Below are positions 4,607-61,009 of a stretch of 64,000 nt of DNA, piece after piece (the first letter of the stretch is position 1; each line of letters starts with the position of its first letter). Under the pieces are notes generated by a model. The model saw nothing but the letters and a program-made list of their open reading frames with translations. It had not been told where the DNA came from and did not search any database. The DNA is from Trichosphaerium sp. ATCC 40318 (taxonomy: Eukaryota; Protista; Tubulinea). Location of the stretch: positions 1 through 64,000 of the forward strand of contig JALMLS010000635.1 in the NCBI GenBank assembly GCA_038496445.1, in the 5' to 3' direction. The position numbers and the translations under genes were made by a program.

Positions 4607-6975
4607 ATGGACAACAACAACAAAAACAGCAATAAAAACGTACACCAATCAGTTTTTTTTCTTTTTTTCTTCATATTAATGCTGTTCAGGATGTAGATCA
4701 CGTGATTCCAATTACCAAGCCGCCAGTGTTGGATGATCAAAGTGCGTTTTAAATTTTAAACGAGTACAGTTTCCCTGGACTAAGTGTTTGGCCTTCTGTT
4801 CGCGAAACTGGGCTACAGCGTGTTGTATTTCGTAGAAACACGTGTGTTTTGGCGCCATTTGTCCGACATTTCCATTAAACAGCTCCTTCAAGTTGAGCTA
4901 TAACTCTATAATTGTGAACGCTCAAAACAGTTCTAACCTTTTTTACAGGCAATGACCAGTTGTTTAACGAAGTTATGGCTTTTGCTAAAAAGGCCATAAA
5001 GATGCACAATTCGAAACCCAGGAATCCCCAGATTAACCTAAATGATGCCACACAATTCAAAGCATGTGAGTATTTATCAAAGGGAGAATGGAAAGAGCTT
5101 GTTAACAGTGATAACAAACTAAGTAAAAAAACTGAAAGACGAAGGTAAAATTTTTGATTTGTTTTGGTTTGGATTGTTCTTATTTAACCTTACACGAAAA
5201 TGAACTTAGTATACGAGATGCTGCAAATATGGTTAAAATGTATATCGTAATACAAAAAGATCTACAAGGGTTTAAAAAGCACCTGAAAGAACTGAATGCA
5301 GTACACTTTTTTTTTGTTATCACAGTGATATGGACACATTGCTTATGATTTTAGACTCGAACAAAAAGGGGAAACAAAGTACCAGGACACTTTTTGAGAA
5401 CCTATTCTGCAGCAGTCTTTATGAAAAATGATACAGCGAGAAAGCAGGTAGTGTTGGGTTTTTTTTTTAATGTTTTACAAATTTATTTGTTTTTTAAGTT
5501 ACTCGTTGCTCTCTGTAGATGCTTGTTCTCAGGGATAAATGCCCGCAATGGCGGAATGTTTTCCAATGCTCAAATGGCACAAGATAAGGTACAGATAAGG
5601 AGGTTTTAAGTAGTGTCTTCAAAGGTATTGACGAAAAAATTAGTTGAAAGAGTTTTTGCACATGAACGGCCTTGTATTCAAAGAGCCTGAACAATTCAAG
5701 CCAGATAGCATATACAAGGCTGTTACAAGCTTCGATTTAGATCTGTTATTCAATAGAGGTGGCTTTAAAGACACTGTGTATGCGTTGGAGATATACGACA
5801 CGAGAGTGTCTTGGAAGTCGTTACATTGTGGGTACATTGTTCAAGAAATGCTACTAGAAATGTACCCAACGCGATTTGATTTAGGTACTAGCCTCACGTG
5901 TTTTTTTCCCATCTTGTTTGCCTCATCTAAATAAACGTAGCAAAGCAGTTGCTTGAACATTACAAAAAAGCACTGAGTGTAACGGATTGCAACAAAATGA
6001 AGACAGCTATCTTAACAAAAGAAAAACTACTAGCGCATGCGAAACATCAAGCAGAAGACTATGCTCAAAGAGAAAAAATGTATATAGCGAAAAAATCAAT
6101 CAAACGAGAGAAGGAAATACAACAGGAGGGTAAGAACCGTGGTGACACAGAAGTTACACTAAATAGGAGATCATACATTGGTTTTTTTCCCTCTTTTCTT
6201 TCTTGATCCAGAAAACAAAACTAACAAGTTGTAGATCCTATGGACTGTGAAGATTCTAGAATAGGTGATCCAATATTGAGTCCTCCTGTTATTAAAGACA
6301 ATCAAACTGTTCATGCTTGTTTTGAGTGGCTTAAACAAAATACAGGTAGTTAGTTTTTTTTTGTTCTTAAATGACTTCTAATAATGGTTTGCAGTCATGG
6401 GTGAAATTTACAACTCTAAGAACCTGCAACAAAGTAATGAACAAGGAGAAGATCATGATGATTCAAGAATGAATGATTTGGAACCTGAGCAAAATGTCTC
6501 TGAAGAAAAAAATGCAGAAAAGTCAGACCAAGACATTGTGATAAGAAAAAGAAAATCAAGAGTTACGGCAACTACAAGTACCAAGAAACAGCGAAAAAAA
6601 CCACCATTGCGGTATACATTTGATGTAAATCACAAGGCCGCTGTACAAATTAAAACAGAAACGCCAGACACAGTACCAATTGCATTCCTCGCAAAAGAGC
6701 AGTTGCCATCAACTCAACCAACAAATAATGACTTTGGCAATGGTACCTGGGATATATTGTTATTCTTTATGAATAATATCTCTGTAGATGGTTTACCCGA
6801 CAATTTTGAAGAACTAGACACGGATTATATAATGGTAGTTCGTTTTAGTAAGTCATTCTTCTTTAATCACTGTTTTTTTATTAAAAAGTTGGATTAGGAG
6901 GCAAAAGCTATTTCAAGACACCAGCAACTAAGAAGTTTATTAAAGAAAAAGATCTACCGAATGTCAGGATCTAGA
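4607..6975 (+). CDS. Unknown multi-exon, probably nuclear protein (family copy 2, apparently intact)
   Basis: About 11 exons join in frame through GT-AG introns: MDNNNKNSNKN...LFNEVMAFAKKAIKMH...LHCGYIVQEMLLEMYPTRFDL...KRKSRVTATTSTKKQRKK (NLS-like)...LPDNFEELDTDYIMVVRF-GGKSYFKT...VRI*. Motifs are conserved with the paralogs. Confidence 0.75.
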
Positions 6976-7400
6976 GACAAAAAGATTTATCAGTGATAGC
7001 AATCGATCATGTCAAGTAAATCACGTGATTGTTATATATTGAACGTGGACTTCCCATCACTTTTCTTGAGCTTGCTATATCCGGTTATCACCTTGCGTAT
7101 GTTTGCTAATTTTTCCACTTTTGTCACGTGATCACTGTGTTTTAAATACAAGTTGTTAAGCGACAAATTGACAAGAATAAAACATTTCATAACGTTTACT
7201 CAGCGCATCACCTATTATTAAGCTATTATCTCTCTGCTGTAAGGTACACATGAGATTTATCTAATAGCAACACTGTACGCTATTATAACTCACTCACTCA
7301 GTCAAATTCAGGCGTTACAAGTTAATAATTAAGAGGATACAGCAAACTGTCATATAGGAAAAAACCGTTGGTGTGAATTCTCAAACAAAGTTAAAAGACA

Positions 7401-9622
7401 ATGGATACGGAAAGTTCGCGATCTCCTGATGAGTCGTCATGCGAATCTAAAGGCAAGTAACTGGTTTTTCTTTTGTGCGTGCTTAAGTGTTTGTGAGTGG
7501 TTTTAGGCGAAGCAGACTTTTTTGAGGACGTAATTGAGTTTGGTCGAAAAGCCATAAAGCTACACCACTCGAAACCGCGACAACATAAGATTGATCTAAA
7601 ATCCGCTACGATATTCCCAAGAGAATACTTGTCATCACGTGAGTGGAGGGACCTTGCCTCTGCATGTAATAAAAGAAAAAAATCCGGGTAAGTACAAACT
7701 GCTTGGGTTCTTACTTGCTAAATGGTTGCTAGTAAACCTAACAAGAACGACGCCAAGGAGTATTTTAAAACATATATTGTAATACAGAAAGATGTGGATG
7801 CGTTTAAACAGCATTTGTCCACCATAAAGGAGGTAGGCTTTTTTGTTAAGCCATTACCAAAAAATCTTGCTAGTTTTATGGAGCCACCCTCACTTCACGC
7901 TTACTGTTTTAGATGGAAAGTGATGGTAGTATATTTTACGGTCACAGTACTGAAGTTTATAGTAAGGCAGTTTTCTTGGCTAACAAGAAAGCAAGAAACC
8001 AAGTAAGTGCATTCTTTTATTTTTAGTGTTTTTGGGTATAATGTTTTATTAAAGTTGTTCTTGGCCATACGTCAAAGATTATTCTCAAAAGGTAATAGAC
8101 GATGCAATAGCTCAATGTTTACAAACGCCCAAAACATACAAGACAAGGTACTGAAAAGTCATATAGCAACCCAGTTTGTAATTGACAAAAAATTAGCTGA
8201 AACAGTTCTTAACTTCGAACGGTCTTGAATTCAAAAAACCTGATCACGTGGGAGATCTAAGCATTTACAACGCTGTCATGAACTTTGATTTAGATCTTTT
8301 ATTCAACAAAGGTGTATTTGAAGATACTATCTATGGGCTGGAGATCAATTACTCAAAATACTATTGGAAGTCGTTACATTGTGGGTACACTGTTCAAGCA
8401 ATGTTACTGGAAATGTATCCAACACGATTTGATTTAGGAACTTTGTATTTTTTCTTGTTCCTCGTTTGTTTTTTTTTGGCACTTACAAGTAATAGCAACG
8501 CAATTACTCGACATGTATACAGACGCATTGAAAACTGCCAAAACCAAGAATAAGTCAGCTGCTTTGATAATAAAAGAACTACAAGATAATCTGGAAAGTC
8601 ACAAGAAAGACTACACGCGAGGCAACGTGAAGAATACTGAACGAGCAATTACACCAAAAGGTAACTTGGTTTTTTCTCACTTTTTTCTTCATATACGCAT
8701 TTATAATATTTCCTAACACTCATAGTACCTTACTTCAGATATGAATCTGAATCATTAAGCCCACATGATGTTGAAGAAAGTGAGGACAAAAGTGTTGATA
8801 AGGATGCGAACGAAATCATTTGTATTCACACAGAACCCAACTGTAGTACTATTTCTGAGCGCATGGCTGCGTACAAGAAAGATCAAGAAGAATTGAAACG
8901 TATAAGAAACAAACTGTCTGCCATTGATACCCAAGACACACTTCCAAAACTCAAAAGGAAAAGAGTGGTTAATACAACTACTCAATCAACAATCAACAAG
9001 AAACAAAAAAGAGCACCGAAAATAGATATGCCTGCTACTTCAACGAATATTGTTGATTCAATGCAAGTTGATACAACACTAGCTCCTCACACAACTAACC
9101 AAGAGACCAACATAATAGACCTACCAGCAATGCCTCCCTTGATACAACCAAAAATTCCTCAAACAGTAAACAAATCAGCAAGATTTGAGCCAATGTTGCT
9201 TCCAAAATCACAAAATACGACACCATTGCCTCCACTCACATTGCCAACATTATCACCTCCGAGCATTCAACAAGTAATACCAGAACCAGAATCACGTGTG
9301 ACAGAAATACAACAAATGACAGAAGTACAACAAATTTCCTTAACAACCTTAAATGATGATAGCTCAAGTGAAGGTACAACATTTAGTATTACACGCTTAC
9401 TATACCTAAAAAGTCTATAAAGAATTACCTGAAGACTTTAAGGATATTGGAGAAGATTATGTGATGATTGTTAGTTTCAGTAAGCAGCTACTACTCTAGG
9501 ACTAATCCATTGAACCATATTTTGAAAAACTGAAACTAAAACTTTGTTCAGGAGGCAAGTACTATAAACAAACGTCAAAAACTGGAAAGTACATTGAAGA
9601 ATGCATTAACCTGGACAAATGA
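7401..9622 (+). CDS. Unknown protein (family copy 3); requires one GC donor and one GA donor
   Basis: Exons are open and homologous to copy 2, including the C-terminal LPEDFKDIGEDYVMIVSF-GGKYY motif. The first donor is GCAAGT (7453); the donor after YPTRFDL reads GAACTT (8438). Confidence 0.65.
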
Positions 9623-11910: not shown

Positions 11911-14087
11911 GCAACATACACAGTAAGAGGTTTTATGATATCAAAAGACCTAGAGCAAGCGCAAAACTATCCCTGAGAATTCTAAACTAGAATCTGTTAC
12001 TCTTGGAATACTGTCTCCTTGGGTTTACTGTGTAAGCGATACAGTAAATGAAACAGCAAATGAAGATTATGAAAATACTGCTGGGCGCAGAGAGTGGAAT
12101 ATTTTTCCACGTGTTGTGCAACAAGGTGTAAAACCATTCAACCTTTCAATTTATGGATACTATGCAAAGGGTGTTGAAATAGCTGAAGAAGGATCTATGA
12201 ATGTGTGTATAAACGGTGAATGCATTCTAAAACAAGATTTGTTTTATTTGGTAAGCAAACTATTTTCATATTTTTTCCAACAATTTTAATCACGTGTTTT
12301 AGGACTATGGTGAAGTTTGCAATTTTCTTGATGTTTCAGCAGAAGATAAGATAGATAGAAATAGTTTTAATACCATATATGACATTGTTTGTGGAGAAGA
12401 AATAGAAGAAACTCCAATGGGCTGCCTATATAATCTATGTCTTCATATTGGTGGACAAATTGGAAAACTAGAGAGAATTTTATTAAGCAGTTCCACTTCT
12501 TGTATACACGCACACATGCGTGGGGATCATGTTTTAATTGTTTTTATTGTGCTTTTTTGACTTTGAACGTCAAAAAAAAATCAACTCTGATTCTGCGTAA
12601 AAAAAATTTATTTTTGCGGAGAAGATTTTAAAATACTATTTTCTCCTCCTGTTATGCCTTTTCAATGTTGATACCACTAACGTATGTCTCACTTGGAATG
12701 TTGTACCTGTTGTGAATACCTAAGGGCTGCTACAGGCTTTTGAGTCACAGTACAATTAAAAAATACCCAATAGCACATGGGAAGCTTTCTTTGCTTGTTA
12801 GACATGCATAGCACGCGGCTAAAAGCATTTGCGTGCAGTCATTGTGTGAATGAAAATGCAGTTGTGTTAAAGGTACGTTCAAAACCATTAAACGGCAGCC
12901 ATAATGCGTCAATTATTATAACACATTAATGACTACCCGTTCTGAGAGTATGGCTGCCGTTTTATGGTTTGTCTTTGAGATTTCGCCTAAATATCCCATC
13001 TCAACTATTTTTTTGTACTACAAAAAGTTATTAATACACTTTCTGAGGTATGCAGCGACAAATTCATGCCTAGTGAACCGTTTATAAACTCAAATTAAAA
13101 AATACCAAAAATAGTCCATCAAACCACTCAACAATCATGCCCACACAAGGACAGGCGTTTGGGGTTTGAGTGCAATGAACCAATTGAAGAAGTTGCCGCA
13201 GGTCAGCACAAAAAAAACAAAACATTGTCAAGAATATCAAAATACCGTCATATGCACGCTTTCATTCAAAAATGGTATGTGGGAGGGTACAAAGTTAAAG
13301 TAACAACGTTTAAAAGTAGTGAACAGCCAAAAAACTTAAAATTTTGGGCAATTGTATAGCGACTTTATTGCTAGCCAAACTCCTTCCAATGATACTACAG
13401 TGTACACGGCAATTGATTGGAGCTTTTTAGATTACTATTATGGAACAGGGGATGAGACTTTTTGCCTATAATTTGTAAAAATCACATGTAAAAACTTAAG
13501 CAACTCATGGAGATATTGCACAATAATTTTGAACGCTCTAATTATAACAGAATATGCCCGACATATAGTAGATAATGTACAAAAAATAAATTCACGTTTT
13601 TGTTTACTGCTAAGGACTTGGCGATTTTTTTTCCAAATGGGAACTACATAATAAAATTCTCTCTATTAGACGCATTTGAACACAAGCTTAAATATTTAGA
13701 AAAATAAACCTAGTGCTTCTACCAAATATTAAACATATTGACCAACTGACTTTGTCGTACGCCAGATGTGAAATGTAAGTAAAGAAGGAAAGCTTTTGGC
13801 ATCTATTGTTCCTGCTTACAGCGATGAGGTTCCAGCATGTTGACGTAATGTTACTATGGCACGAGTGGTTTTTCAACAAAAAACAAATGAGTAACAGCTT
13901 ATCTTTTAATGTCATGTATAGGCTTGACATACTCTACCAATTTTACTCGCACTTCAATTGGAAATTCTGTATCTAAATCATAAGCAAGGGTATCTAGAGA
14001 ACCACCTTCCATGAATGCCATTACAATTGCGTAATTGGGTAGAATAAGGCCAATAAGACTTAATATGTTCTCATGTTGTGGAAGTTT
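11911..14087 (+). repeat. Deleted and rearranged direct copy of 16865-18756 (unknown gene remnant plus kinase exon fragment)
   Basis: 11911-12468 matches 16865-17318 (the latter lacks about 105 bp), 13664-13920 matches 17319-17577, and 13932-14087 matches 18600-18756 (kinase LPQHENILSLIG...AFMEGGSL). Confidence 0.9.
12471..13663. mobile_element. Non-autonomous DNA transposon, 1193 bp, 24-bp TIRs, TA target-site duplication
   Basis: Left TIR GAGAGAATTTTATTAAGCAGTTCC (12471-12494) and right TIR GGAACTACATAATAAAATTCTCTC (13640-13663) differ by 2 mismatches. TA flanks both ends. The empty site GGAAAATTATTAGAC is present in the paralogous copy near 17313-17327. Confidence 0.9.
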
Positions 14088-14088
14088 T

Positions 14089-14740
14089 TTCTTTGAAACC
14101 TTTCTCATTTGTACCATTGTTCCAAACACTCATAGTACTTGATACCATAGGCAATGAAAGAAAATCATTAAACCAGCACAATGAAGACGGTGAGGACAAA
14201 TGCGTTGACAAAGAAACAAAAGAAACATTCCGAGTTCATACAGAACACGTGTCTAGTCCTATTTTTCAGCGCATGGCTGTGTACAAGAAAGATCAAGAAG
14301 AACTGAAACGTATTAGAAACGAACTATCTGCCATTGACACCCAAGATGCACTTCCAACACTCAAAAGGAAAAGAGTGGTTAATACAACTACTCAATCAAC
14401 AATCAACAAGAAACACCGAAAAATAGCTGATGCACCAAACCTGCTTGTTTCAATACCTATAGATACAGTAGCCCTCTCTATAAAGGACAAACCAACTAAC
14501 AAATCAAAGATAGATACTCCAACAATTTCTTCCCGATTACAACCAAGCGTAACAGCACCTTCTCCGACCAGAAACCAAACAGAATTGCTACAAGCAGGAT
14601 TTATTGAATCGGCAAACACAACCAGGATTGAAGCCACAAGCTCCTCCAGTAACACTACCTATAATAACCAGCTTGCCAAACTTTACGTTTCTGCCTACTC
14701 AACGACTACCAGAACCGAACCAGAATCGCCTGTAACCTAA
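14089..14740 (+). pseudogene. 5'-truncated fragment of the unknown family (copy 4) joined to a kinase fragment
   Basis: The ORF has RMAVYKKDQEELKRIRNELSAIDTQDALPTLKRKR, shared with copies 1 and 3. Its upstream exons are missing and replaced by kinase-derived DNA. Confidence 0.75.
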
Positions 14741-16592
14741 AAATGTCACAAGTATTACCATACAATAGTATAAGAAATAAATAGTCTGCTTCATTTCACC
14801 TGAGTAGTTCCAAGTACATCATTGGTAGTACTTACATGCTCATCAAATTAGTTTATTGCATCACATCAAACATCAGCGCTTGTCAGCAATCACATCAAGG
14901 TGTAGTTACTGTAGTAAATTTTAATTCTATACCTGTGATTGTCGGCTAATGGCTTAGCAAAAACTATTTGGGTGCCAAATGGAACAAAACAAAGTCAGCC
15001 AAATGGCTTACATTTTTGTTGTACAGTTTTTTGTTTTCATTTGTTAATCCCTTGCTGTTGGTAGTGTTCTCATACATGGCCTTGGTCAAAATTTGTTTGG
15101 TGGTTGATACAAGTATCACGTGGAATAAAGTTAACTTATAAGCAGGGCGGTGTTCACAACGCTTCTGAGTAGCACTACAGGTTATTAATAACATACATTT
15201 GATTCACATTACGGAATACTTCATTTTCTGACTTTGTTCAGTTTATCTCTGGATGTGCACATTGAAAAGAATACATCAGGATCATTGTCAGGAAATTATA
15301 AGTGCAATAAGTGCAATTTAATGGTAGTCCTTTTTTTTGCACACTTTGAGAAGGAAGGATGCTATTGTTATCAAACAATTTCGTTATTCCGTAATAAATA
15401 TCAATCCAAAATAGATGATACAATCGACAGCAGCACATTAAAACGGACGAGAGAAATGTCAATATACACGCTAGCCTTGATAACGATTTTTACAAAGGTA
15501 AATGGCGCAAAAAATACCAAGCCTCTGAATCACGTGTTGAACTAGCCTTTGGGCTAGAAGACAAAACTGCTTTTCCAATTTGTATCAGAAAATCATAAAA
15601 CTGTCCAGTATGTACAGGCAGCACCTTCTTGCCTCCAATAGTGAGGACTCTTTGGAAGCCTGTCTTAAACAAGCCAACAATTAACTTAAACTGGAAACGT
15701 AAAACTGCAGATTTACTAAAATCAAATAAATGGGAAGTAAAAGCAGCAAAGATACAAAAATTAAAGGTAAGTCAGTACACCACCCTTGCGGCTATCAAGT
15801 GTATGAATTGATCGACTTACGCATTTGTAGCCCCTTCAAACCCTCCAGCGAGTACTAAGACGTCGAATGTAGAAAAGTACATTAGGTTTTAGGCTTGTTA
15901 CCATAGCTTACATTGAGTTGTAGAGAACTTTCGTACAAAGTCATTACTATTGGTGATACTGGCGTTGGAAAGACAAACTTTGTACTGAGATTCGTTGATA
16001 ACACATTTTCAGTTTCTAGTGAAGCCACATTGGGTGATGATTATTACGTAATACGTGCAACATGCAAACAATGCCCAAAACGTTGTTCTCCCAGCAATAC
16101 GCTGCTTACATTTTAGTTTAACATCACATGTTAGAAATTCTAGCTCATGTTTTCGTAGAAGTTTAAAACAATTCAAGTTGATGGCCACCAAGTAAAACTC
16201 AACATTTGGGATACTTTCGGTGTGCTTGTTGCTATATGAGGGTTTGTTTTAAAGATGTTTCTATAGGTCAGAAACGAGTCACCACACATAATATGCAACG
16301 TCCATATAGAGCTGCTAAAGGTGTTTTGATTTTTTTATGATATTACATGCCAGAAGTCTTTTGATAATGTAATACTGTGGCTAAAAGAGGTTGAACGATA
16401 TGCAATGGATAATGTACGAATAATACTTGTTGGAACAAAAAGTGATCTAACAGATGACCGTGTTGTTGATACTGCTGTCGCCAAGGTAAAGTCAATAAGT
16501 TTTATTCTAAATAAAGTACTGTCTTTTGATATTCATCTTAGGAATTTGCTGATCAACTCAAGATAAAGTTCATTGAAACATCAGCCAAAGAT
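14089..16592 (+). repeat. Inverted segmental duplication, copy B (matches 1-2533)
   Basis: Reverse complement of 1-2533; contains a 3' fragment of the unknown family and the intact Rab gene. Confidence 0.95.
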
Positions 16593-17922: not shown

Positions 17923-20900
17923 TTACAGTGAAAGAGATTTGTCTTCCCACTTGGCTATCATTTTACAAATAATTTTAAAATTAGGTCGTTCGTTTTCATC
18001 CTTTATAAAACAGGCATTCATTATTGTAGAAACATTATCTGGTGTGCACTCTGGAACACCAGGGTTAATCTTTTCTTTCAAAATCTTATATGCAATCTCA
18101 ACATCATTGACCTCTGAATATGGCCATTTTCTTGCGAATATCTCATACCTATAAAGTGTTAAATCAACAAACCGATATCGCTTGATTCAAGCCACTGACT
18201 TAAGAAAAAAAACAGAAAAAAAAAAGACTTGTAAGGAAGGTCGTACAATGTGATGCCATAAGACCAAACATCCGATTTAACACCGTATTGTCTTGTTGCT
18301 AGCGCTTCAGGTGACATCCATCTTATAGGAAAGCCATTATCCGCTTTAGTAGCTCCTTTCATCTCGTACTTATCGACAATTCTCGCAAGACCAAAGTCAG
18401 CAACCTTCGGATTCATATTACTATCCAATAAAATATTCCTAGCTGCCAAATCTCGGTGCTAGATACAGGTTAATACAACAGCTTTTGCTGAGAATAGTTT
18501 GACATACAATGATTTTAAACTTATGTAAATGCTTCATGCCTAAAGCAATACCCCTATTTGAGAAAAGAATGAGAACAGTATTTCGTAGACAGTGACGTAC
18601 TCTACCAATTTTACTCGCACTTCAATTGGAAATTCTGTATCTAAATCATAAGCAAGAGTATCTAGAGAACCACCTTCCATGAATGCCATTACAATTGCGT
18701 AATCGGGTAGAATAAGGCCAATAAGACTTAATACGTTCTCATGTTGTGGAAGTTTCATCATAATAGTCACTTCCTCCTATTTTCAAAACATTACCAATTT
18801 GTACTGACAATGACAACAACCAAAGAGAACCGTATTCTCTAGAGAACAAAAAAAATCGATTTCAGGTGCTTGATAAAACACAAAAGCAGTTTTCTCAAGT
18901 ACATCAAAAAAAAATACTATGGGTTGAGGTGTGTACCATAAAATTATCTTTGAATGCTTGTGAACTACCATTAGGTCGCTTTACAGCAACTTTCTGATTT
19001 TTCCAATACCCTACAAGAGTTATAAATACAAACTAAAGATATATAACACATACCGACTAAAACAACACCAGAAGCACCTGCACCTATCTCTTTTTCTACT
19101 TCTACTTCAGATGAAGGTATAATCATATACCCGGATGTTTTAGAAGCAGATTCGAGTCCTGTAATATTTATACCACTATATGTTTCATGATCTTCATGGT
19201 TAGCGGTTGTAAGTTCTATGCGATGATTAAAACACAAGGAAAGTGAAGAAAGATAAAATGGACAAAAAAAAATGCTAAGGAATAGTGCAGTTGTTGATAT
19301 CTTGCGCCTGCAAGTTGCTTATGTATGAAAATACACTATAGACAATAATCAACAAGCACAGGATCCTATTGGAATGGCAAATGCATCCAATACTTCTAAT
19401 TGAAAGAGAATAAAATCCATACCTGCCACAACGCCTCTTTCGGAGTTTTGAACTTCTAAATTATTTGAACGTTTCGTTCTTATGAAAACATAGCCAATAA
19501 CAACTGCAAGTATTACAATAACTATGAGTGCTACAGCGACAATAGCTGATATAATAACAGCAGGGTTAGAGTTTGATTCGGGTTCAACAGATTCAGCAGG
19601 TTCAACAGGACCAGGTGCTACAGGAAAAAAGTTACATTAAGTGTCAATGCACAAATACTATCCATTGATTTCTTAACGTACATCCGCTTGAAAAAGGTAT
19701 AGAGGTTTCAGGAAACTCAAACAATATCTAGATATGGTTAAGGGCTTATGTACATATACTTACAGAAGCGTAGGTACCTGAGAACTATCTGCTAATGTTA
19801 AAGTAAAATCAAGCACGTTTTGTTCTATGTTACGCTTTGTTGTTGTAACAGGTGATGCAACAAATGTAAAGGTTAATCCCTGAAGAAATATATTAGTATA
19901 AAACCACGTGACCTTCGATTAAATAGAATCGTTCAGACAATCTCAGTTTTACCATTAAAAAAAAAACTGCAACTGCTTTTGTTGGCGTACATTTGTGGAT
20001 GTCACTGTGGCACTAACATTTTGCCCGACATTGAACCACAACACTGTAATATTTTGCCTTTTATTTGCATTAGTATACACTTGTGAAAGAGAAAAAGGTT
20101 TTTAGGCTATTTTTTAGCACTAAATTTTGTGTTTGTGCATGCAATGCTATCACGAATAGCAAGCTACTTCATAGATGTATATGCACGCAACGCTTTGCGT
20201 GATGCTAGTTGTAAAAATGCACGTGCTTATTAAAATCACGTGTCTTGTCGTAAAATTTGTAAAAGCGTTTTCGGGTCAAATAAGTTTCATCGCGTACTCT
20301 ATAAAGTCAGAAAACGGTGTAACTTTAGCCTCTACTAAAATCTTAACTCTATCACCAATCTAATCCATTAGTTAAAAAAAATACAAGATGTACAATTATA
20401 CCATAAATGGTGTTGTTGTGTTATATTGAGTACAACTTGTACCATCAACACAAAATTGCACATCAAAATCTTCATTAGTAAGTGTAGATGGAGCTTTTGG
20501 TTCAGTTGGAGCCTCAATTGTTGGTGATACTGTTGTAGGAATTGTTGGTGGTTCAGTTGGTGCCCCGGTTGTTGGTGGTACTGTTGTCGGAATTGTTGGA
20601 GGCACAGTTGTTGGTGAAACAGTTGGAGGCTCAGTTGTTGGTGATACTGTTGTCGGAATTGTTGGTGCAACAGTTGGTGCTTCGGTCGTTGGTGGTAAGG
20701 TTGTCGGAATAGTTGGCGGCCCAGTCGTTGGTAGTGTAGGAGGTCCGGCACAGGGTTGCTAAATCATCTGGTTAACGTGATTGTAACAATTAGCGTTTAC
20801 CTTGGCAGTGTACTCAGGCACCTCAAAGCCTAGGAAGTAGCCTAGTCCACGTGTAACACTAGAGCCTCTAAATACATCATTATCGCCTCCGTCTATACGA

Positions 20901-40886: not shown

Positions 40887-41392
40887 GATGAAAGCCAATA
40901 ACCGCCGCACAATGAGATTAAAGCTTGTACACTTATCTTTACGATTAAATATTGTAGCCAGTGTTGGCTGACTTTTGAAACACGTGAGTTTTTTCCCTGT
41001 TACAAATATTGTAACGCTTTTGTAAGCTCCGGTTCTTGACATTGTTACTGGTTCCACAGACTGGATAAAGCAAAAGAATGCTCAAGCATCGCTTGACACC
41101 TCCCCAAAGAGACATACTCATTGCATAGAAAGTTATCTGGGTGTTTCTTAATATGCTCAATATTGAAGGCGAATTTTCCTTGCAAAGACATGTGGTGGTT
41201 GGACATTGTAGAGCAATACACAAGTAAAATAAAACATAGTAAGCATTGTATACAATACCGTACGTTACAAGTTTTCTATTGTGTATTGACAAACAACTCG
41301 CTAAATAAATAACAAGTAACGGTTGTGAATTACCCGAGTTACAGTCAAGTTTGGAGTATACACTTGGTCAACACTCCATAATCAAATACAAC

Positions 41393-43469: not shown

Positions 43470-43689
43470 ATACATCTCCTAATAAATTGATGACGTTTCC
43501 ATTCACAACCAGTGCTACTTATGAACAATATCGAATAGTAGCACTTCTGCTACAATAAGCACAATAACACCTATTGGCTATGGTAGAACAAGCATTACTA
43601 GAGAAAACGAAGTGAAAGTCTTGTCTTGGTCCATTACTTTAGAATACTATTGCTTTTTCTGTCCGGTTTATAGAACTGCACTAAATGAC

Positions 43690-43931: not shown

Positions 43932-44125
43932 TTTGCACTACATTTCGCGAAATTAGGCTTGTTCTATTTCTTCGCAGTCCGTTCTTTTGGAGGGCTTTTG
44001 TACAACATTTTCGCAGAAAACAACTCATTTTTTAGTCAATCGTGGCTCTAATGAACTAACATTTGATTTAAACAAAATATGTCACAAACGAAACAGTTTA
44101 TCAATTTCGCGAAAAGTAGTGCAAA
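43932..44125. mobile_element. MITE-like foldback of about 194 bp with 23-bp inverted repeats
   Basis: TTTGCACTACATTTCGCGAAATT (43932-43954) vs AATTTCGCGAAAAGTAGTGCAAA (44103-44125), 1 mismatch; no clear target-site duplication. Confidence 0.7.
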
Positions 44126-47352: not shown

Positions 47353-47688
47353 TTAACAATACCAGTCGCTCCAAGTTGTAAAACTGTTTAAAGTCAAAAA
47401 TGTTTTATTCTCAAGAGTGTCGCTAGAAGAAACTGCATCGCTCAATTCAAACTTTTTTAAAATCTCTCTTTTAGCGTGGTGTATAAGCATCACTATATTA
47501 CAATCCTTCAAGTTTTTACAAGCAAGAGTCTCACATTTTTCCGCATTTAGGTGAGACATGCCAACACGGCCACTGTCTTTAAAAGTTTGTGTTTCTAAAC
47601 CAGAACTTCCATGGAAATCCTGTATTGCCAAAGTATCCACCTTTATTCGTCGTAGGTTTCCAAACAAATAAAGAACTACCTTGCTCAT
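47353..47688 (-). CDS. Small intronless hypothetical ORF, 111 aa
   Basis: ATG-initiated open frame with protein-like composition; no recognised motif. Confidence 0.3.
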   Translation of the reverse strand: MSKVVLYLFGNLRRIKVDTLAIQDFHGSSGLETQTFKDSGRVGMSHLNAEKCETLACKNLKDCNIVMLIHHAKREILKKFELSDAVSSSDTLENKTFLTLNSFTTWSDWYC

Positions 47689-47739
47689 TGTTGCGTATTG
47701 TGACTCTTTGAGCTACTTAACCCTCTAGCAACTGTTTTT

Positions 47740-48649
47740 TTACATCATAGCACAACGTCTCTTTTGTGTAATAGGTTTTGATGGGGTTAAATCTCTTTGC
47801 TTCTTTATCTCTCGTGCAACTTGATAAAAAGCTTCTCCAACATTTTCATTTGTTTTAGCTGATGTCTCATAAAAAGGAATGCCGTAATGCTTTCCAAGCT
47901 CTTCTCCTTCTTCTTTAGTAACTTGTCTGTCTTCTTCTAAATCAACTTTATTCCCAACTATTACTGAAGGGATAGAATCTACATCCTTGATCCTAAAAAC
48001 GAATATCAGCAAACTATTTTGTTTCAAAAAAAATGTGAAAAGTAAGTTTGATGTTTATTCCTAAACTCGAAGCTCCTTTGCTTTTGGATAGAGAGCTTGT
48101 TTTTCAGCACATGTTTGACTATTGGTAGTCTGGCTGTCGTAGATGGATGCTCCAATCCACAAGGTACATTGGAATATAGACTTGTAAAGTGTTCCGTACG
48201 CTCTAACTCTGTCGTATATACCTGCTACTTCCTCGAACGATACACGGCTTGTAATGGCGTAAACAAATAAAAACCCTTCGCATGCTTTTATGTACTGCAC
48301 GTTAACAAAAACGTTAGTTATATATACGTCACCTGACCAAAGTGCTTACTCTATCACGCATTGTAGCGTAATCTTCTCTTCCCGCTGTATCAAAAGCATC
48401 CAATACAAGCGTCTCACCGTCCACAATACATTGTTTACGATACCTACAGAAGAGTTATAACGCGTTTTAATAAAAACACAAGTAAAGAGTTAAAGCACAT
48501 AAAAAAGTGTTTTTAATTGATTAAAACGCTTACGTATATTCTATGGTAGGGTCATATTCATCAAGGAAGTAGTTTTGAAAAAATTGTATTGAAAGTGCTG
48601 ATTTACCGACACCCCAGTCGCCAATAACGTGTATCTTATAGTCGGACAT
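47740..48649 (-). CDS. Ras-family GTPase (CAAX = CAMM)
   Basis: Four exons: [23 protein letters not shown]...[13 protein letters not shown]...[13 protein letters not shown]...GNKVDL...ETSAK...RRCAMM*. Confidence 0.93.
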
Positions 48650-49363
48650 TCGAGTGCTTTCCCGTTGTAAAATGCTGTTTTTGTTGTGCACAACCGGACT
48701 TTGTCCCAGAAAAGAAATCATTGAATGGATATAAATAGAAAAACTCTCATTTTTTCAAGCCCGTATTTTGATCGGCTGCATTTACTATGTTGTTGTATTG
48801 CTGACAACGAGCAGTTTATATACCCTAGCAATTAGTTTTAAGGCGAATAAGTTGTGTTAATTTTGTCTCCTCAAAGTCTTCTAAATTGACCGTACGCATA
48901 CACATCAAATTCATTGTTTTGTTACTCGAAAGTGTTTGTGACTTAGCACTTTGGCTAAGTGGTGAGTCCGAATAAAATCATTATCGGAAAGTAGATAGAA
49001 AATGAAAACAAAATATGTTGCTATCTTCAATGGTTGAAACTGACTGATATCAAACACCTAGAACACTTTATAATAGAGGTTAACTGTAGACACTATTATA
49101 AAATAGAATTGAACATCAATCTGTAAAACCAAGCATTAACTCGTAAGTTTTAGATTTTCTGTTGGTCAATCATATCGCATTCTTGGCGCTTTATAATATC
49201 TTAAATAGTGAGTTCGTATTGAACTAAAAAAGATTATGTCAACGAACATAACAAGTTCGTCTACTTGTGGTGTACAATGTTTTTGTTATACTTAGTGAAG
49301 AGCACTGTTGAAGGTTCCTTAAGTTGAAATTCTGAGCTTTATTTTCTGTTGATGAGAACACTC

Positions 49364-51374
49364 TTACTCATCAACTTCTTCAGGCTTATAATGCTTGTAA
49401 CTTTCTCGAATTAAGGTCCTGTTTACAGGAGTTCTTCTGTTTGGTTCATGTTTACTCTGACCATATCCTGACTCTTGATAAAACTGCTCACAATCAAATT
49501 TCCAAAAAGTAAAAAACTGTTGAACATGTTGTTCAAAATAGTCAAGTTCAGCGTGTGAAAACCGTCGTATCTTTAGATGAAGATTCATTAAAGCAGTATC
49601 AGCATCCAATGGTGTAGAAAAATGGCAGAGAGTCTTTGTGTAAAAAGTGTATGCAGTAGAACGATTGTACGGAACACCATCCTAAAAAAAAAAAACAAAT
49701 CAGAAGAAGAAAAAATACATCACTTTTATATCGCTTCAAATCACGTTTTAGGTAAAATCTAATTCCTTACTTAATACTCCAACATAGCAAAAACACCAAG
49801 CGATGTAGCTTTATTCAAACAATATGCGTTCAAAAGTGGTGTTTTTGTTTGAAAGGAGTTTAAGAAAAAAACAAGAAAAAAAAAGAGGTCTATCGAAAAG
49901 TAGACTTGAACTCATGATAACTGTTTTTGATGTTGATTATACATACCATTTTTTGCATTGCTAGTACCTTACAAGCCAATAAAGGCTTGGGAGCATACCC
50001 AAGAAGTTTTGTAAATATGTTATACGTTGTACGACATTTATCACGTTTCATTTCTGGAATCACTTTTAGAGCTCTATGAAACTTACCTTTATTAAGGTAT
50101 ATCGTTATTTTATGACCATAATGTTCTGAGTCTCTAGGAACACCAAGTTTTTTCATTTCAGATAAAAGCTCATCAACACCTTCGACATTGTTGAGTTGTG
50201 AATAAAGTCTGAATAAAATCATAAAAAGTTTGCTGTTTGGAGCGACACCTTGCTTCCTCATGTAATCATAGAACTCCAATACATTACCAGTTTTACCAAG
50301 CTTAAATAATATGTCCATTATAAGTGAGTATGTTGTAGCATTTGGTTCAAAATTAGGTGTTTGTGTTTGTCCATTTATTTCTTTACTTCTGAAATGCTGT
50401 GAAAAAAACGTTACAGCTGTATCGAACTGTTCTGCTTTTATATATGCTTCGAGTACTAGATTTAATGTATAAACAGTTGGCTCTATACCTAGGATATATA
50501 CCATATTAATATCACAAACAGTAAGGGAGTACGAATGACGAAAATAGAAGAAGAAAAAAAAAAGTTTCCTTTGCTTGACACGTTTTTCTGTTGCCACATT
50601 TTTTTCATTCTTCGCCTACCTTCTTTTCTCATATTACTGTACTCTGTTAATACTGTAGTATACTGGCCAGCTTTTAATCTTTTCTTCATTTTTGTAGCGT
50701 ATGTCACAGAATCACCCTTTACGTTGTTTGCCTAATGTCAGTGTTAGCCTTTTTTTTTTTCCTTTTTTTTCAGAATTCGCCGTTAAACGACTTTAAAGCC
50801 AACATAAAAACGTTTCAATACGCAAACATTATGTATATACGTATTACGCCACCAGAGAGTGGTTTCGGTCGTATTTTTTTTTTTGAATTCAAAATGAAAA
50901 AAAAATGCTCTAACGTTTGCCTTCATTTCGTTTGATATCGCCAATAGCTCTTCAAATGATGGAGCAAGATTCATCAATACATTGTAAACTGGCAAATCAT
51001 GCGCCAGCCCTTTTGGCTTTAACCAAGATTCTCGCTCTTGTTTTGCTAGTGCGTAGTTCTTCGAGCCTGTCATGGACCATGTCCAGTGTTTTACTGGTTC
51101 GTACTCTGGATCGTCTTTGTTCTCATAATAACGTTTCAAAATGACATCTATATGTATTAGCATAACAACGGGCGCTTTTGTTAAATTAAAGCGTTTTAGA
51201 AAATGTATCACAAATACGCGTTTTAATAGGCGCTGTAAAGTAATATGATTGTCAGTTACCTGATAAGCGTTGTTTTTTCTTTCTATGCACCGCAAATGAG
51301 CGTATTTGGTACCTGAGTTGTTGTACCGTCTGATAATGAATTTGAAGGTGGTTAGAACACACCGAGCGGTGCAT
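49364..51374 (-). CDS. Pentatricopeptide-repeat protein, probably mitochondrial
   Basis: PPR motifs HDLPVYNVLM, EPTVYTLNLVL, EPNATTYSLIMDILFK.G and MRKQGVAPNSKLF; basic N-terminal presequence. The 3' end may extend further. Confidence 0.85.
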
Positions 51375-51455
51375 GCTACGCAATACTCAAATTATTTCAA
51401 ATGACTTAATTACTACGATTGTTTCATTGTAAAACACTAGACAACGCCATAAACC

Positions 51456-52862
51456 ATGAGTAGAAACAGACCAGAGCTAAAAGCACCTCCTGAGCTTGTA
51501 CTTGCAGAGAACACTTTTTCTAATTTCTATGCTAATTCTTATGTAGTATTATGATGAAATGGAGGCTAAACGCTATTCTAGAAAGTAAGGAAACAAGTTT
51601 TAACAAAATTTTGTAATTAACTTTTACCAGCAACCATATGGTAGATGTACAACGCGGTCTTGCAGCCCGCTGTCTCGAGTTATTACACTTACCAGAGGAT
51701 ACAGGGCCATTGATGATTTTAGACGTTGGGTATTACTTTACAAATCATTATGAGCATCACTAGAGCGTAAATAACGCGTTTAATAGTTGTGGAAGTGGTT
51801 TATCAGGTGAAGTAATAGAAGAAGCTGGACACTTCATGATAGGCATGGATATTAGCCCAGCTATGCTTGGTAGGTTCCTTGTTAGCTATTTTCAACAAGA
51901 GTATCGAATTCTAACGCCCTAAAACAGAAATTGCAAGGCATAAAGAGTTTGAAGGCGATCTATTCCTCTGGGATATGGGACATGGTGTTTCTTTTCGTCC
52001 TGGAACGTTTGATGGCGTAATCAGGTAGCTTACAAAAAAACTCAAAAAAAAAAGTTGTCAAACTGACTGTTATTTGAAGCGTATCAGCTGTACAATGGTT
52101 ATGTAACTCCGACACTAAACACAACAAGATATCAAGGCGAATGAAAGCTTTTTTTGACTCCCTCTACGCGGGTAAGGACAAGAAAAAAAAAGCGCTTGTA
52201 GTCAACGTACTGTACCTAATATTATGCATATAGCCTTGAAACGTGGTGGTCGTGCTGCTCTACAATTTTACCCCCAAAACGCTCAACAAATTGAACTATT
52301 AACGCGGTTCGCAATGCAATCTGGTTTTACGGGTGGTGTAGTTGTAGATTACCCAAACAGTACAAAAGCAAAGAAATATTATATGTGTCTATTCGCTGGT
52401 CAACAAATACACCAACAGGGTGTTGCTCTTCCTCCAAGACCAAACTTGAGCCATGTACAAGTAGAATTCGAGAGGTACGAAGAATTTTTTTTGATTTTCG
52501 CTTTAAAACCCGTCATGTACGCCTTCATTTACCCATACGCCCCGATATAGAATATATCAGTGTTTTTAAAGGCGTACAGTTAATATTTATACATATCGCC
52601 CTTCACAGGGAGTCCTAGCTTAAAATCTTTTTTTTCTTTTTTTCTTCTTGTTTTTTTCTTGTTTTCTTTTGATTTGTTTCTGTCTTTGTATTTATTCTTT
52701 ATAAGGAGGCGTAAAGAGAGGCATAGTAGAAATAATAGAGCTGTTAAAGGATCAAGACAATGGATTAAGAATAAAAAACAAAGTTTACGTGCACAAGGAA
52801 AAGATGTTCGTCCAACTACAAGAAGGACAGGAAGACTTCGTAACAACAAAAAATTCTTCTAA
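51456..52862 (+). CDS. BUD23: 18S rRNA m7G methyltransferase BUD23/WBSCR22
   Basis: [77 protein letters not shown] and a C-terminal WIKNKK...GKDVRPT. Confidence 0.96.
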
Positions 52863-53314
52863 CAAATTTCAATATTCATCTTTGTGGACAAGATTTATTT
52901 CCATTTGAAAGCCGTAACTGTAAAATAAAAAACCTATTCATCGTGTACAGCTTATTGACAACCACGTAGACGCAACCACCTATACCTTATGTCTACGGTT
53001 AGGTGGCCACGTAAGCTCTACTCGCCGTGTCTCAAACGGTTGGTACTCTGATGGTATTCGCAGTGGCGGAAAGCAACCGTTTAAAGTTGAATGGAGGGTA
53101 ATAAAAAACACAGGTATGCACACTCTACGCGTATACCTTTGTTGTACAATACATTTTGGCTCTCAAAGAATTGTTAAGCACTTTTATCGTAGTAATACAT
53201 CACACAAGAAGAACAGTGCCTACTGGGCAAGCCTAAGACTAACGCGGTTGGTTTTGGACGAATTGTTGCGTTTATTACAATTATCTGAAACGGAAATTGA
53301 GTAGTTTGAGTCTT

Positions 53315-55029: not shown

Positions 55030-55350
55030 GTAGAGAATTTTTGAAACAATAGACACTTTTCCTTCAGTAATAGTTGGGAATAAAGTTGATTTAGAAGAAG
55101 CAAGAGAAGTTACTAAAGAAGAAGGGGAAGAGCTTGGAAAGCATTACGGCATTCCTTTTTATGAGACATCAGCTAAAACAAATGAAAATGTTAAAGAAGC
55201 TTTTTATCAACTTGCACGAGAGATAAAGAAGCAAAGAGATTTAACCCCATCAAAACCTATTAAACAAAAGAGACGTTGTGCTATGATGTAAAAAAACAGT
55301 TGCTAGAGGGTTAAGTAGCTCTTCAGCAAGGCGGACAAAGAGTCACAATT
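55030..55350 (+). pseudogene. Orphan last exon plus 3' flank of the Ras gene (inverted copy of about 47697-47966)
   Basis: [11 protein letters not shown]...[10 protein letters not shown]...RRCAMM*; no upstream Ras exons are present. Confidence 0.85.
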
Positions 55351-58462: not shown

Positions 58463-58941
58463 AGTAATGGATCCGGCTTCAGTTCGTTTTCTCTAGCAAT
58501 GCTTATTCTACTGTAACCAATATGGGTGTGGACGATTCTGCGGAGAATCATTCCCGTATGTTTGTACAGAACACAGTGTCAACCTTGCTTGTTTGAAGAT
58601 ATGAACTATTATTTGGACTGAAGTGCTACAAGGTGGAATATATGCTGTCAGGTACTTCTTTGTCTTATATTCCAGTGAAACAAAATAACCAATTCTCATT
58701 CGTAAACTGCAACATGTAGTGTTTTGATAAAGACAAGAAATATGACTGCTTTTTTTTTGTCAAACTGTTTCGTTTGCAACAGATTTTGTTTAAATCAAAT
58801 CTTAGTTGTGCAATTATTTGTGAGCAGGAGGTATACAATAGGTGCTCTTGTGCTTATTGTAGCAGAAGTGCTACTATTCGATATTGTTCATAAGTAGCAC
58901 TGATTGTGAATGGAAATGTGATCAATTTATTAGGAGATGTA

Positions 58942-61009
58942 TTAAGGTGGTGATTTGAGTAAAATCAAGCCTGTGTGAGCAAGCATTGTAACCTTTTGAA
59001 CGTATTGTTTCTCAACTGGATCATATAACTCACTAGGTAGCTTAATGGGAGTGTCAGTAGTGTTCGTAGGATTTACAAGAATAGCGCCATTATCGAATAG
59101 CCTCATGTATGACACGTGTCCTGAGGAAAAATTAATAGTTTATTTGTTTTCTGAGAAAAGTTGAAGGCTCTCAAGTATCACTGTACCTTTAGGTTGATAG
59201 CCAGATATGTTGTCTGGTGTTTCTGTATGCATAGGAGTTCCTATATTCCAGGAATATCTTTCGTGTACATGTGCATATCGGTGCCCAGAAGCGTTTCGGT
59301 ACATGCAAGGAAGACCGAATCTCATTTTTTGCTTTGGGTGACTGGATGCTAAAAAAAAGTTGTTTAAATACGATTGTAGTAGACATGACTCAATGACATG
59401 TTATAAAGGTTACCTAGAAGAAATGTGGAATATCCAAATGTTTCTAGTCTATCCCTGTCCTTTGCTATCTCAAGAAAAGGTGATTTGCAACCAGCTTGAG
59501 ATATCATTGGAAAAGCTGCTACATCTTTTTGTGCTGCATCCATTGCGTTTTGGACGTTCCTCACCCAAGTCGTTACCGGTAGAAATGACCAAGATAAACT
59601 CGATATATTGCACCCGTTATGGAACGGATCTGTATTTAGCTCTGTACCCGAGAAGGCTTCCAAACTAAACCAAAGGTAAGCATTTGAAAAAAAAAGCTAT
59701 TTAAGCAATAGTATTTGTTTACCTGTATCCGTCAAGTGGTCTCACCGTACTGCCTTCTACTAGTATTCTGCAGTTTCCTTTTTCAGGAAACCAACATCCT
59801 AACAAAGATTAATCATTGGAAAGGTAGTAGTATTTGGCAAAACCTTCAGCGTTGTTTGCGAGAATTGTAGGGTAATGACCAAATTTCTGGTATAGTTGAT
59901 TCCAAATACTCTTTAATGCGTTCTGCTCAGCAAGTAAATGTGCATCAGGTGTATACGGGGATCCAGTTTTGAAGTTCCAGATGTCATCAAGTTTAACTTT
60001 TACATTATCAATCCTTACAGTGTTGTACATACCTAAGAAAAACATGAAATTGGCTGTAATTTTTTTAGAAAACATGAATTGTTTTGGAGAAACTCTGACA
60101 CTTGGGAGCCCAAGTGTTACTGATATTGCAACTATCAGGATAAAAACCTTTGATAACGATGTAAACCGTATCATAGATGTACACAATTCGAGAATATGGT
60201 TAAAATGAAGTTGTACATAAAACCGAGAAGAATCCGTACTTGAAGAAAAATCGTCATACCAAGAACCGTCATAGCCTTTCGATATTGAGCTTGATGTTGC
60301 ATTTACAAGAACTTGAGTATATGCTATCGCTTCAGGGTCTCTTTGATAATAAATAGGAGAGTCCTTTGAAAATCCTGGAACGCGTTCTGCAAAGTACAAA
60401 GGAGAAAATATAGTTGAATTTTCATTGTGCTTTGTTGGCTTTGTATCATCCAAACCACGTGTTACAACCAACTTTTTATCAAGTACTTTATTGATGCGCA
60501 TTATCTCATCTCCAACTCGTACAAATGTGACATACTCAGCGCCGTTTTTGCTGATGTCTCCAGGTATTGTACTAGCCTTTGGTAGGAGTTAAAAAAAAAC
60601 AAAGCAAAAAAGAGATGAAATACTGCGAACTTACCAAAAACTTTGCTGTATTTGACAAGTACTCAAAGTCGAGTGTGGTATCTGTAGTAGATATATCAAA
60701 AGATAACCTAGCGTTTGGAGTAAACGCTACTGATTTTCTAACGTTAATAGGTTCAATAGTATTTGCTGGACCTGTAACGGAATTAAAGTATTGTACTACT
60801 TTGAAATTGGGGTTAACTTTGTGAAAACCGTTTATTTGCTCTAAAGATGCAGCCATTTGCGCGAAACCAAAGTTGCTAGCGATAACATTGTAGTCTGAGT
60901 CCGTAAATCCAGTATTTATCGAGTTAATAGTGTATAAAGGATAAACCGTTTCACAACACGTGAAAGTAGTAAACGCCGCCAAGATAGCAAACACTAAAGC
61001 GACAGACAT
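58942..61009 (-). CDS. Secreted glycoside-hydrolase-like protein, copy 2 (inverted duplicate of 41393-43469)
   Basis: Near-identical exons and introns; frames remain open. Confidence 0.7.

Follow-up and report, generated by a model that had tools for sequence, protein, structure and literature searches.

The window analysed here (the whole stretch of 64,000 nucleotides from Trichosphaerium sp. ATCC 40318) harbours genes with mostly tiny introns, along with a minority of considerably longer ones (Table 1). A sequence-only reading of this DNA had listed 13 such intervals as a distinct, highly folded class with a mode of 207 nt. RNA contigs from four public runs, covering positions 47500-53000, exactly skip 47993-48199, 49682-49946, 50732-50920 and 52475-52705; splicing is thus seen for all four RNA-testable long introns (207, 265, 189 and 231 nt), while the remaining nine of the 13 listed intervals are sequence-based. 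At 47993-48199, an unspliced RNA contig is also present at a depth similar to that of the spliced one. Three of the boundary pairs proposed earlier (at 47993, 50732 and 52475) proved exact, while the interval at 49682 spans 265 nt and not about 263. The proposed acceptors 30913 and 34183 are inconsistent in frame with the next intron, and an acceptor 8 nt further (30921 and 34191, respectively) fits. GT..AG ends and compatible flanking open frames are found for the candidates at 4742, 19216, 27827, 20058 and 31023.

Table 1. Long introns, related shorter introns and doubtful segments of the window.
Position	Strand	Feature	Support
4742-4948	+	207-nt candidate intron, donor GTGCGT, branch motif CTAAC; intron 2 of a predicted gene with ATG at 4607	frames read by hand
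19216-19422	-	207-nt candidate intron; open frames on either side, 71 and 80 codons long	gene finder agrees
20058-20297	-	240-nt candidate intron, donor GTACGC; putative acceptor plausible, gene finder favoured 19967
27827-28018	-	192-nt candidate intron	gene finder agrees
30702-30921	+	220-nt intron, acceptor corrected; paralog of 33884-34191	frame consistency
31023-31272	+	250-nt candidate intron, donor GTACGT; paralog of 34293-34396
33884-34191	+	308-nt intron, acceptor corrected; paralog of 30702-30921	frame consistency
34293-34396	+	104-nt predicted intron; paralog of 31023-31272
42162-42365	+	204-nt segment previously listed as an intron; open in frame, coding-like score
47993-48199	-	207-nt GT-AG intron, donor GTACGG	spliced in RNA contigs
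48444-48533	-	90-nt intron folding as a single hairpin	RNA-verified
49682-49946	-	265-nt GT-AG intron in a PPR-repeat gene	spliced in RNA contigs
50732-50920	-	189-nt GC-AG intron in the same PPR-repeat gene	spliced in RNA contigs
52475-52705	+	231-nt GT-AG intron, donor GTACGA; last intron of a BUD23/WBSCR22-like methyltransferase gene	spliced in RNA contigs
60033-60239	-	207-nt paralog of 42162-42365; 180 nt align at 97.8% identity

Two of the listed intervals, 42162-42365 and 60033-60239, form one recent paralog pair and look coding rather than intronic. Neither contains an in-frame stop, the length stays a multiple of three, and the in-frame coding log-odds of the pair are +3.5 and +3.8, versus -9 to -23 for four long-intron controls. 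A branch-like motif is missing near the 3' end of both. Homology search with the read-through open reading frame (41900-42586) and an exact-protein look-up of the single-exon LRR gene returned no match. The intron status of the pair is doubtful, and the segments may represent an exitron or plain coding sequence.

The long introns appear to be ordinary U2-type spliceosomal introns; GT/GC...AG removal is observed in the four RNA-tested cases. Their donors (GTACG, GTATG, GTGCG, GTACA and GCAAAC) do not match the U12-type consensus RTATCCTT, and 11 of the 13 listed intervals carry, close to the 3' end, a branch-like YTRAY motif of the kind expected about 10-40 nt ahead of the acceptor. The earlier observation that many long introns start with GTACG holds (7/13 as listed); this pentamer starts about half of the long introns, versus about 10% of gene-finder-predicted short introns and none of 10 verified or hand-curated short introns. 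No regular internal set of donors and acceptors, as would be left by nested or recursive short-intron units, was found inside the long introns.

Intron lengths in the window were approached with an ab initio gene finder of our own, based on dynamic programming; its coding model was either a codon or a periodic Markov one, combined with splice-site matrices, a branch-motif bonus, a length prior and strand masking. Depending on version and settings, it recovered 8-13 of 15-16 known introns; when self-trained it split long introns, and it also called false introns, among them 50489-50619, which is at odds with the RNA contigs. The gene finder was thus too unreliable to serve as more than a hint, and no unbiased length histogram of the window could be drawn from it. 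Sliding-window coding potential was useless for defining non-coding gaps, because the exons are approximately as short as the scoring window. The RNA-verified lengths, taken from the same contigs over 47500-53000, are 46-62, 90, 112/165, 189, 207, 231 and 265 nt. Introns of 190-310 bases are real as a minority in a genome of tiny introns, but their standing as a discrete class with a mode of 207 nt is not established: the long introns range from 189 to 308 nt, intermediates of 90-165 nt occur, and paralogous introns differ in length (220 nt against 308 in one pair, 250 against 104 in the other), the 104-nt paralog of the 250-nt intron showing that paralogs need not stay in one length class. 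The distribution may have a dip from about 130 to 185 nt. Exactly 207 nt is seen at 4742, 19216 and 47993 as well as at the doubtful 60033; four of 12 introns at this length correspond to p ~5e-4 under a smooth length distribution, and three of 11, once the doubtful pair is removed, to p ~0.015-0.02. Lengths divisible by three are also in excess (8/12, p=0.019). Both the recurrence of 207 nt and the divisibility count against an ordinary long tail, though the latter may reflect ascertainment bias, since exons sharing a genomic frame are easier to connect when reading unaided. With 11-13 cases, one pair of them doubtful, a discrete 207-nt class is not demonstrable from the window. A literature survey on Physarum intron length, bimodal intron lengths and nucleosome- or introner-related length peaks yielded no description of this genome or of a second intron peak near 200 nt.

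Compared with dinucleotide shuffles, the mean folding z-score is -1.4 for long introns, -0.87 for mid-length introns and +0.09 for short introns, versus -0.07 for generic genome tiles and -0.20 for intergenic tiles (Mann-Whitney p=6e-5 and 7e-4). The description of the long introns as highly folded is thus weakly borne out; the excess is strand-symmetric (mean antisense z -1.75 vs sense -1.47 for the 13 listed intervals) and nearly vanishes with shuffles that preserve homopolymer runs, against which the long introns score -0.04 and the controls +0.32 and +0.50. The remaining shift of 0.4-0.5 SD relative to the controls (p=0.10 and 0.017) counts against an ordinary long tail. Runs of at least five A or T account for 22 bases per 207 nt of long intron, as compared to 9.6 in the window (2.3 times), and such A/T-tract-rich composition makes both strands appear more foldable than dinucleotide shuffles. 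Sense-specific excess stability beyond composition was not found in the long introns, the predicted stems of which measure 6-10 bp, and most of their heavy folding can be put down to A/T homopolymers.

The earlier claim that these introns are closed near the splice sites likewise holds weakly. The ends of any long RNA lie close together in a predicted fold, so that every long intron seems closed near its splice sites, and shuffles give the same distances. In minimum free energy (MFE) structures, the end-to-end distance of the long introns (7-35) is no shorter than in shuffles, and the folded distance separating the 5' splice site from the 3' splice site or branch region is not reduced either; Fisher combination of the 13 tabulated fractions gives p ~0.05 for the branch-region distance and no trend for the 3' splice site distance. 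This general property does not account for a small, cognate-specific complementarity between the two ends. Among 23 introns of at least 90 nt, the first 12 nt gain about 1 kcal/mol when paired with the last 60 nt of their own intron instead of those of other introns (p=0.006), an advantage confined to the last 62 nt (p=0.026) when compared with the first (0.44) and middle (0.12) segments. Furthermore, in six of the 13 listed intervals the MFE structure joins positions 1-9 to a stretch that lies 5-45 nt from the 3' end (in 52475-52705, for example, positions 1-9 are predicted to pair with 209-217). The clearest closing stem of the window is predicted in the RNA-verified 48444-48533, where one hairpin over positions 1-77 (z -3.2) would pair the 5' splice site with the branch region. 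The proposal that structure shortens the effective splice-site distance is weakly supported by cognate pairing, but not by the MFE distances, and the predicted stems frequently bury the donor itself.

With regard to origin, the earlier statement that the long introns share no primary sequence is borne out: blastn and global alignments within the window match only the recent 42162/60033 pair. In this alignable pair no compensatory changes occur, and one substitution disrupts an 8-bp stem. The interiors of 33884-34191 and 30702-30921 cannot be aligned (conservation is limited to about 10 nt at the 5' end and about 20 at the 3' end), and their stems differ. A multi-copy, sequence-similar family, as would be left by introners or MITEs, was sought within the window and not found; no terminal inverted repeats were detected at the ends of long introns, and direct repeats at intron boundaries measure 0-4 nt, except at 50732-50920. 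This intron, which also contains a T-run/A-run inverted repeat, is flanked by the 8-nt direct repeat AGGCAAAC, over which its junction can slide. Derivation from residual coding sequence (intronisation) was likewise rejected, as the 41 in-frame stops are not depleted in comparison to 52 and 46 in the other frames. Nearby intergenic DNA contains a MITE-like element of 194 bp, bounded by terminal inverted repeats of 23 bp.

As the folding is mostly a by-product of A/T tracts and a 207-nt class is not established, the long introns look like an ordinary long tail of the intron population. We consider such a tail, with weak yeast-like end pairing and with no dedicated compaction system, repeat family or demonstrated 207-nt ruler, to be the probable explanation. 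A selected, structure-based compaction, in which helices place the 5' splice site beside the branch/3' region and so keep long introns spliceable for an intron-definition spliceosome, appears unlikely. It would explain the different stems of paralogs, any helix-forming sequence being sufficient, and it draws support from the cognate duplexes, the six intervals with paired 5' ends, the hairpin of the 90-nt intron, the fall of z with rising intron length and the same behaviour in yeast (bioRxiv 10.1101/2022.07.22.501175) as well as in diplomonads and parabasalids (PMC6679479). Nevertheless, the effect is small and depends on a few introns, A/T tracts largely account for the overall stability, which is strand-symmetric, donors are often buried in stems, folded distances do not fall below those of shuffles, and the alignable paralogs carry a broken stem.

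Less credible is a discrete class of about 207 nt, the size of a short intron with about 150 bp added, whose length would come from a ruler or a fixed-size insertion, either of a nucleosome-sized unit or of an old, unrecognisable introner/MITE family. The repeated 207-nt length, the difference of 146 nt between the paralogs of 250 and 104 nt, the direct repeat at the GC-AG intron (as expected after insertion or break repair) and the vicinity of a MITE-like element are in its favour. Against it, the lengths in the other paralog pair are 88 nt apart, one of the 207-nt intervals (60033) is probably coding, two listed lengths were off by 8 nt, lengths form a spread with intermediates, the excess of multiples of three may be a bias, the long introns lack similarity to each other or to the rest of the window, most long inverted repeats of the window are located elsewhere, and a repeat resembling a target-site duplication occurs at one intron only; the earlier suggestion of nucleosome-sized insertions is not supported. 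The composite view that a class of about 200-210 nt, preferably a multiple of three, is set by a ruler or insertion and made spliceable by closing helices and GTACG is very doubtful; if true, it would constitute a second "minimal intron" mode without a sequence family. Finally, the long introns might host functional small RNAs (snoRNA, miRNA-like or other) to which the stems belong, as had also been suggested, but this is highly improbable: no Rfam family reaches gathering score anywhere in the window, a C box ... D box arrangement is absent from all 13 long introns scanned, paralogs have not retained each other's intron interiors and the stems are short.

Under the favoured explanation of an ordinary long tail, the long introns would make up about 6% of introns in a length distribution peaked at 45-65 nt, and they would probably have grown by accumulating fast-evolving, low-complexity sequence rich in A/T tracts. 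Judging from correlation, efficient removal of longer introns appears to rely on the stronger GTACG donor together with branch and 3' signals that are normal and sit close to the 3' end. In some of them, a short helix joining the 5' end to the region upstream of the 3' end may act as a yeast-like zipper stem, a function suggested by a weak statistical signal.

A comparable arrangement is known from Saccharomyces cerevisiae, the compact genome of which has intron modes at about 80 and 400-500 nt and zipper stems that join the 5' splice site region to the branch region in a minority of long introns (bioRxiv 10.1101/2022.07.22.501175). Such stems are not conserved in sequence, occur in different introns in related species or paralogs, start at least 10 nt from the donor and are backed by in vivo DMS probing and mutagenesis (bioRxiv 10.1101/2022.07.22.501175). 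The present window resembles yeast in its short-intron mode with a longer set and in the unconserved stems of some introns; it differs in the lengths (about 55 and 190-310 nt), in the computational nature of the evidence with an effect of ~1 kcal/mol, and in predicted helices that often include the donor. In Giardia, Spironucleus and Trichomonas, "long" introns fold to the spatial length of short ones (PMC6679479). The underlying idea is the same, i.e. internal pairing constrains the donor-acceptor distance; however, those organisms possess very few introns, which show extended, fused branch/3' motifs and stem-loops that are long and obvious, whereas this genome is intron-rich with ordinary signals, and its MFE end distances equal those of shuffles. 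If confirmed genome-wide, the weak 5'/3' pairing together with GTACG would carry over to an intron-rich protist what has been observed in yeast and diplomonads, namely that long introns are tolerated by compact spliceosomes with the aid of RNA structure and stronger signals. The main present value of the analysis is cautionary: A/T homopolymer tracts can mimic high folding against dinucleotide shuffles, and a predicted fold makes any 200-nt RNA seem closed at its ends. Introners, as in Micromonas, Aureococcus and others, occur as multi-copy families with recognisable sequence similarity. Unlike these, the long introns described here form no detectable family among themselves or with the rest of the window; the likeness lies in introns of ~200 nt within a small-intron genome and in 50732-50920, the 8-nt repeat of which supplies both junctions.

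Contigs from four public RNA runs, aligned to 47500-53000, skip exactly four long intervals, and all four of the long introns tested with RNA are thus real (see table). The boundaries proposed by the sequence-only reading were confirmed for the introns of 189, 207 and 231 nt, while the fourth, read as about 263 nt from 49682, is indeed an intron but has a length of 265 nt. At the 189-nt GC-AG intron the junction can slide across eight identical letters, and a usable 3' AG occurs only at the placement already proposed. An 8-nt direct repeat, AGGCAAAC, lies on both sides of this intron with one junction from each copy; this is the footprint expected of insertion or break repair, with the intron gain possibly recent, and 50732-50920 is the sole long intron in the window with such a flanking repeat. 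Short introns in the same contigs measure 46, 49, 55, 55, 57, 58 and 62 nt, along with one of 90 nt. The adaptor of SMART template switching was found at one transcript 5' end in one run and a poly(A) tail in another. Over 47963-48228, contigs keeping the 207-nt intron are about as deep as spliced contigs in two runs, which could reflect intron retention or DNA carry-over in the library.

Introns, genes, duplications and repeat features located in the window
Feature	Coordinates	Strand	Length	Remarks
Long intron	47993-48199	-	207 nt	Skipped exactly in RNA contigs
Long intron	49682-49946	-	265 nt	Skipped exactly in RNA contigs
Long intron	52475-52705	+	231 nt	Skipped exactly in RNA contigs
Long intron, GC-AG	50732-50920	-	189 nt	Skipped in RNA contigs
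Intron, RNA-verified	48444-48533	-	90 nt	Single predicted hairpin spanning positions 1-77, z -3.2
Intron with alternative donors	51148-51259 / 51148-51312		112 / 165 nt	One acceptor; forms in different RNA runs
BUD23-like gene	51426-52945			5' end at 51426 (template-switch adaptor adjoins); poly(A) tail after 52945
Doubtful intron	42162-42365	+	204 nt	Paralog of next row
Doubtful intron	60033-60239	-	207 nt	Paralog of previous row
Paralogous orphan genes	41900-42589 / 59809-60501		229-230 aa	Open frames; no homolog in protein search
Candidate intron (gene finder)	29752-29978		227 nt	Starts GTATCCTC; donor resembles minor (U12-type) consensus
Duplication	1-2535 / 14089-16592
Duplication	41074-43576 / 58836-61328
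Duplication	30645-32879 / 33827-35980
Duplication	2197-3940 / 7242-9014
Duplication	47710-47981 / 55050-55321
MITE-like element	43932-44125		~194 bp	Predicted intergenic DNA; 23-bp terminal inverted repeats, 96% complementary, 148 nt apart
Strong intergenic hairpin	12882-12970			Arms 22 nt, 95% complementary; loop 45 nt
Strong intergenic hairpin	24336-24412			Arms 28 nt, 79% complementary; loop 21 nt
F-box/LRR protein	38125-39717		530 aa	Single exon

The remaining nine intervals were assessed by reading-frame continuity. Frames fit introns at 4742, 19216, 27827 and 31023, and less surely at 20058. The intervals proposed as 30702-30913 and 33884-34183 do not fit introns with those acceptors, as the frame then closes ahead of the next donor; an AG 8 nt downstream gives a 101-nt exon whose phase matches the next intron, so the true lengths are 220 and 308 nt. 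The introns proposed at 42162 and 60033, copies inside a 95%-identical inverted duplication, became doubtful: both lengths are divisible by 3, in-frame stops are absent where about 3-5 are expected, and a coding model retrained without the genes of this pair scores them +3.8 and +3.5 in frame and -12 to -32 in the remaining frames. The same model gives -9 to -23 in the continuing frame for four control long introns, of which two are RNA-verified and two are candidates. The coding-like segment contains a hydrophobic stretch; indels scramble its final 27 nt between the copies, and the remainder is 97-99% identical.

We consider it rather probable that the long introns are the ordinary long tail of U2-type introns, with A/T tracts, stronger donors and some closing helices. 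On this mechanism, they would be enriched in A/T-tract sequence that evolves fast, longer introns would use stronger donors, and a subset would carry short closing helices resembling yeast zipper stems. In paralogous genes with exons 78-90% identical, the corresponding introns align only over their outermost bases, some 10 nt on the 5' side and some 20 nt on the 3' side, and their lengths diverge (220 vs 308 nt; 250 vs 104 nt). Short-word blastn of the long introns returned just low-complexity matches and the 42162/60033 pair, and global alignments against shuffled partners gave nothing above common end signals, in keeping with the earlier impression of no obvious shared primary sequence. The long introns showed no sign of nested intron units or residual coding sequence, and their branch-like motifs lie near the 3' end, in the normal position. 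The frequent GTACG start also proved correct. Among the long introns regarded as secure, 6 of 11 open with this donor, as do four predicted introns measuring 104-139 nt; of the short introns, none of the 10 that are verified or hand-curated does so, and about 10% of the predicted ones do. The gene-finder candidate with a U12-like donor has poorly scoring flanking exons, and a U12 branch motif is not evident.

Folding bears on the alternative of structure-based compaction. Against dinucleotide shuffles, the 13 listed intervals have a mean folding z of about -1.4 (range +0.5 to -2.9), as compared to -0.07 for 207-nt tiles over the window (n=154), -0.20 for predicted-intergenic tiles (n=52), +0.09 for verified or hand-curated short introns (n=10) and -0.87 for introns of 90-215 nt (n=12); Mann-Whitney tests against controls gave p=6e-5 and 7e-4. 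The antisense strand is as stable as the sense (mean z -1.75 vs -1.47), which indicates DNA-level composition or inverted repeats rather than RNA-specific selection. Predicted helices are of 6-10 bp, many of them A-U rich, and runs of at least five A or T occupy 22 bases per 207 nt in long introns vs 9.6 in the window. Shuffles preserving these runs give z of -0.04 for long introns, +0.32 for generic tiles and +0.50 for intergenic tiles, removing about two-thirds of the excess and leaving 0.4-0.5 SD (p=0.10 and 0.017). The description 'highly folded' is only weakly borne out: the excess seen against dinucleotide shuffles and intergenic DNA is strand-symmetric and mostly lost once homopolymer runs are kept. 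Most of the window's longest inverted repeats fall outside the long introns.

Closure near the splice sites, claimed from the sequence, survives only in part. The MFE graph distance between first and last nucleotides is 7-35 in long introns, with medians of 15-25 in shuffles (150 for each intron); the share of shuffles equalling or beating the real closeness ranges from 0.15 to 0.91. As shuffled RNA of the same size also looks closed, the apparent closure is uninformative. Pairing of the first 12 nt with the intron's own last 62 nt is nevertheless slightly stronger than with those of other introns (-6.2 vs -5.2 kcal/mol, 23 introns of at least 90 nt, permutation p=0.006); among the 13 long introns, cognate p values are 0.026 for the last segment, 0.44 for the first and 0.12 for the middle. 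The clearest closing stems predicted in single introns are those of the RNA-verified 90-nt intron, of 52475 (positions 1-9 with 209-217) and of 33884 (1-7 with 283-289). Four substitutions separate the sole alignable paralog pair (42162/60033); one of them disrupts a stem of 8 bp, and no compensatory change is among them. Compaction appears unlikely, and then as a weak, partial effect. Bimodal intron length with zipper stems has already been described in another eukaryote (bioRxiv 10.1101/2022.07.22.501175), and so has, in other eukaryotes, the folding of long introns to a spatial extent matching that of short introns (PMC6679479).

A separate length class, set at 207 nt or at nucleosome size, is a possible reading, yet unsupported and quite improbable. 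The lengths as listed include four exact 207s in 12 independent values (p ~5e-4) and an excess divisible by 3 (p ~0.004). Corrected independent lengths are 189, 192, 207, 207, 207, (207 doubtful), 220, 231, 240, 250, 265 and 308 nt; dropping the doubtful one leaves three identical values, with p ~0.015-0.02 taken from the 'three or more identical' outcome of a simulation run with 12 values. Divisibility by 3 falls to 8/12 (p=0.019), or 7/11 without the doubtful one (~0.04, hand arithmetic). A tool-free reader joins exons in the same genomic frame more readily, which favours such lengths; further gene-finder candidates (215, 218, 227 and 259 nt, predicted) include none divisible by 3. Intermediate lengths also occur: 90 and 112/165 nt (RNA-verified), 111 nt in a Rab-like gene (from protein logic), and 97-139 nt in predicted introns with good flanking exons. 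The hosting of small RNAs by the long introns is very unlikely here, given no Rfam match across the window and no snoRNA sign in these introns.

The window is gene-dense and intron-rich eukaryotic DNA (G+C 36%) in which no tRNA genes were found; recognised genes encode an F-box/LRR protein, a MORN-repeat protein, a 7tm_3 receptor, a PPR protein and a BUD23-like methyltransferase. Five segmental duplications (four inverted, one tandem) of 70-96% identity lie in the 64 kb, and one of them breaks off 12 nt before it would reach intron 47993-48199 (207 nt) at its 3' end. Several of the closest protein-atlas clusters to the F-box/LRR protein are giant-virus (Nucleocytoviricota) LRR families.
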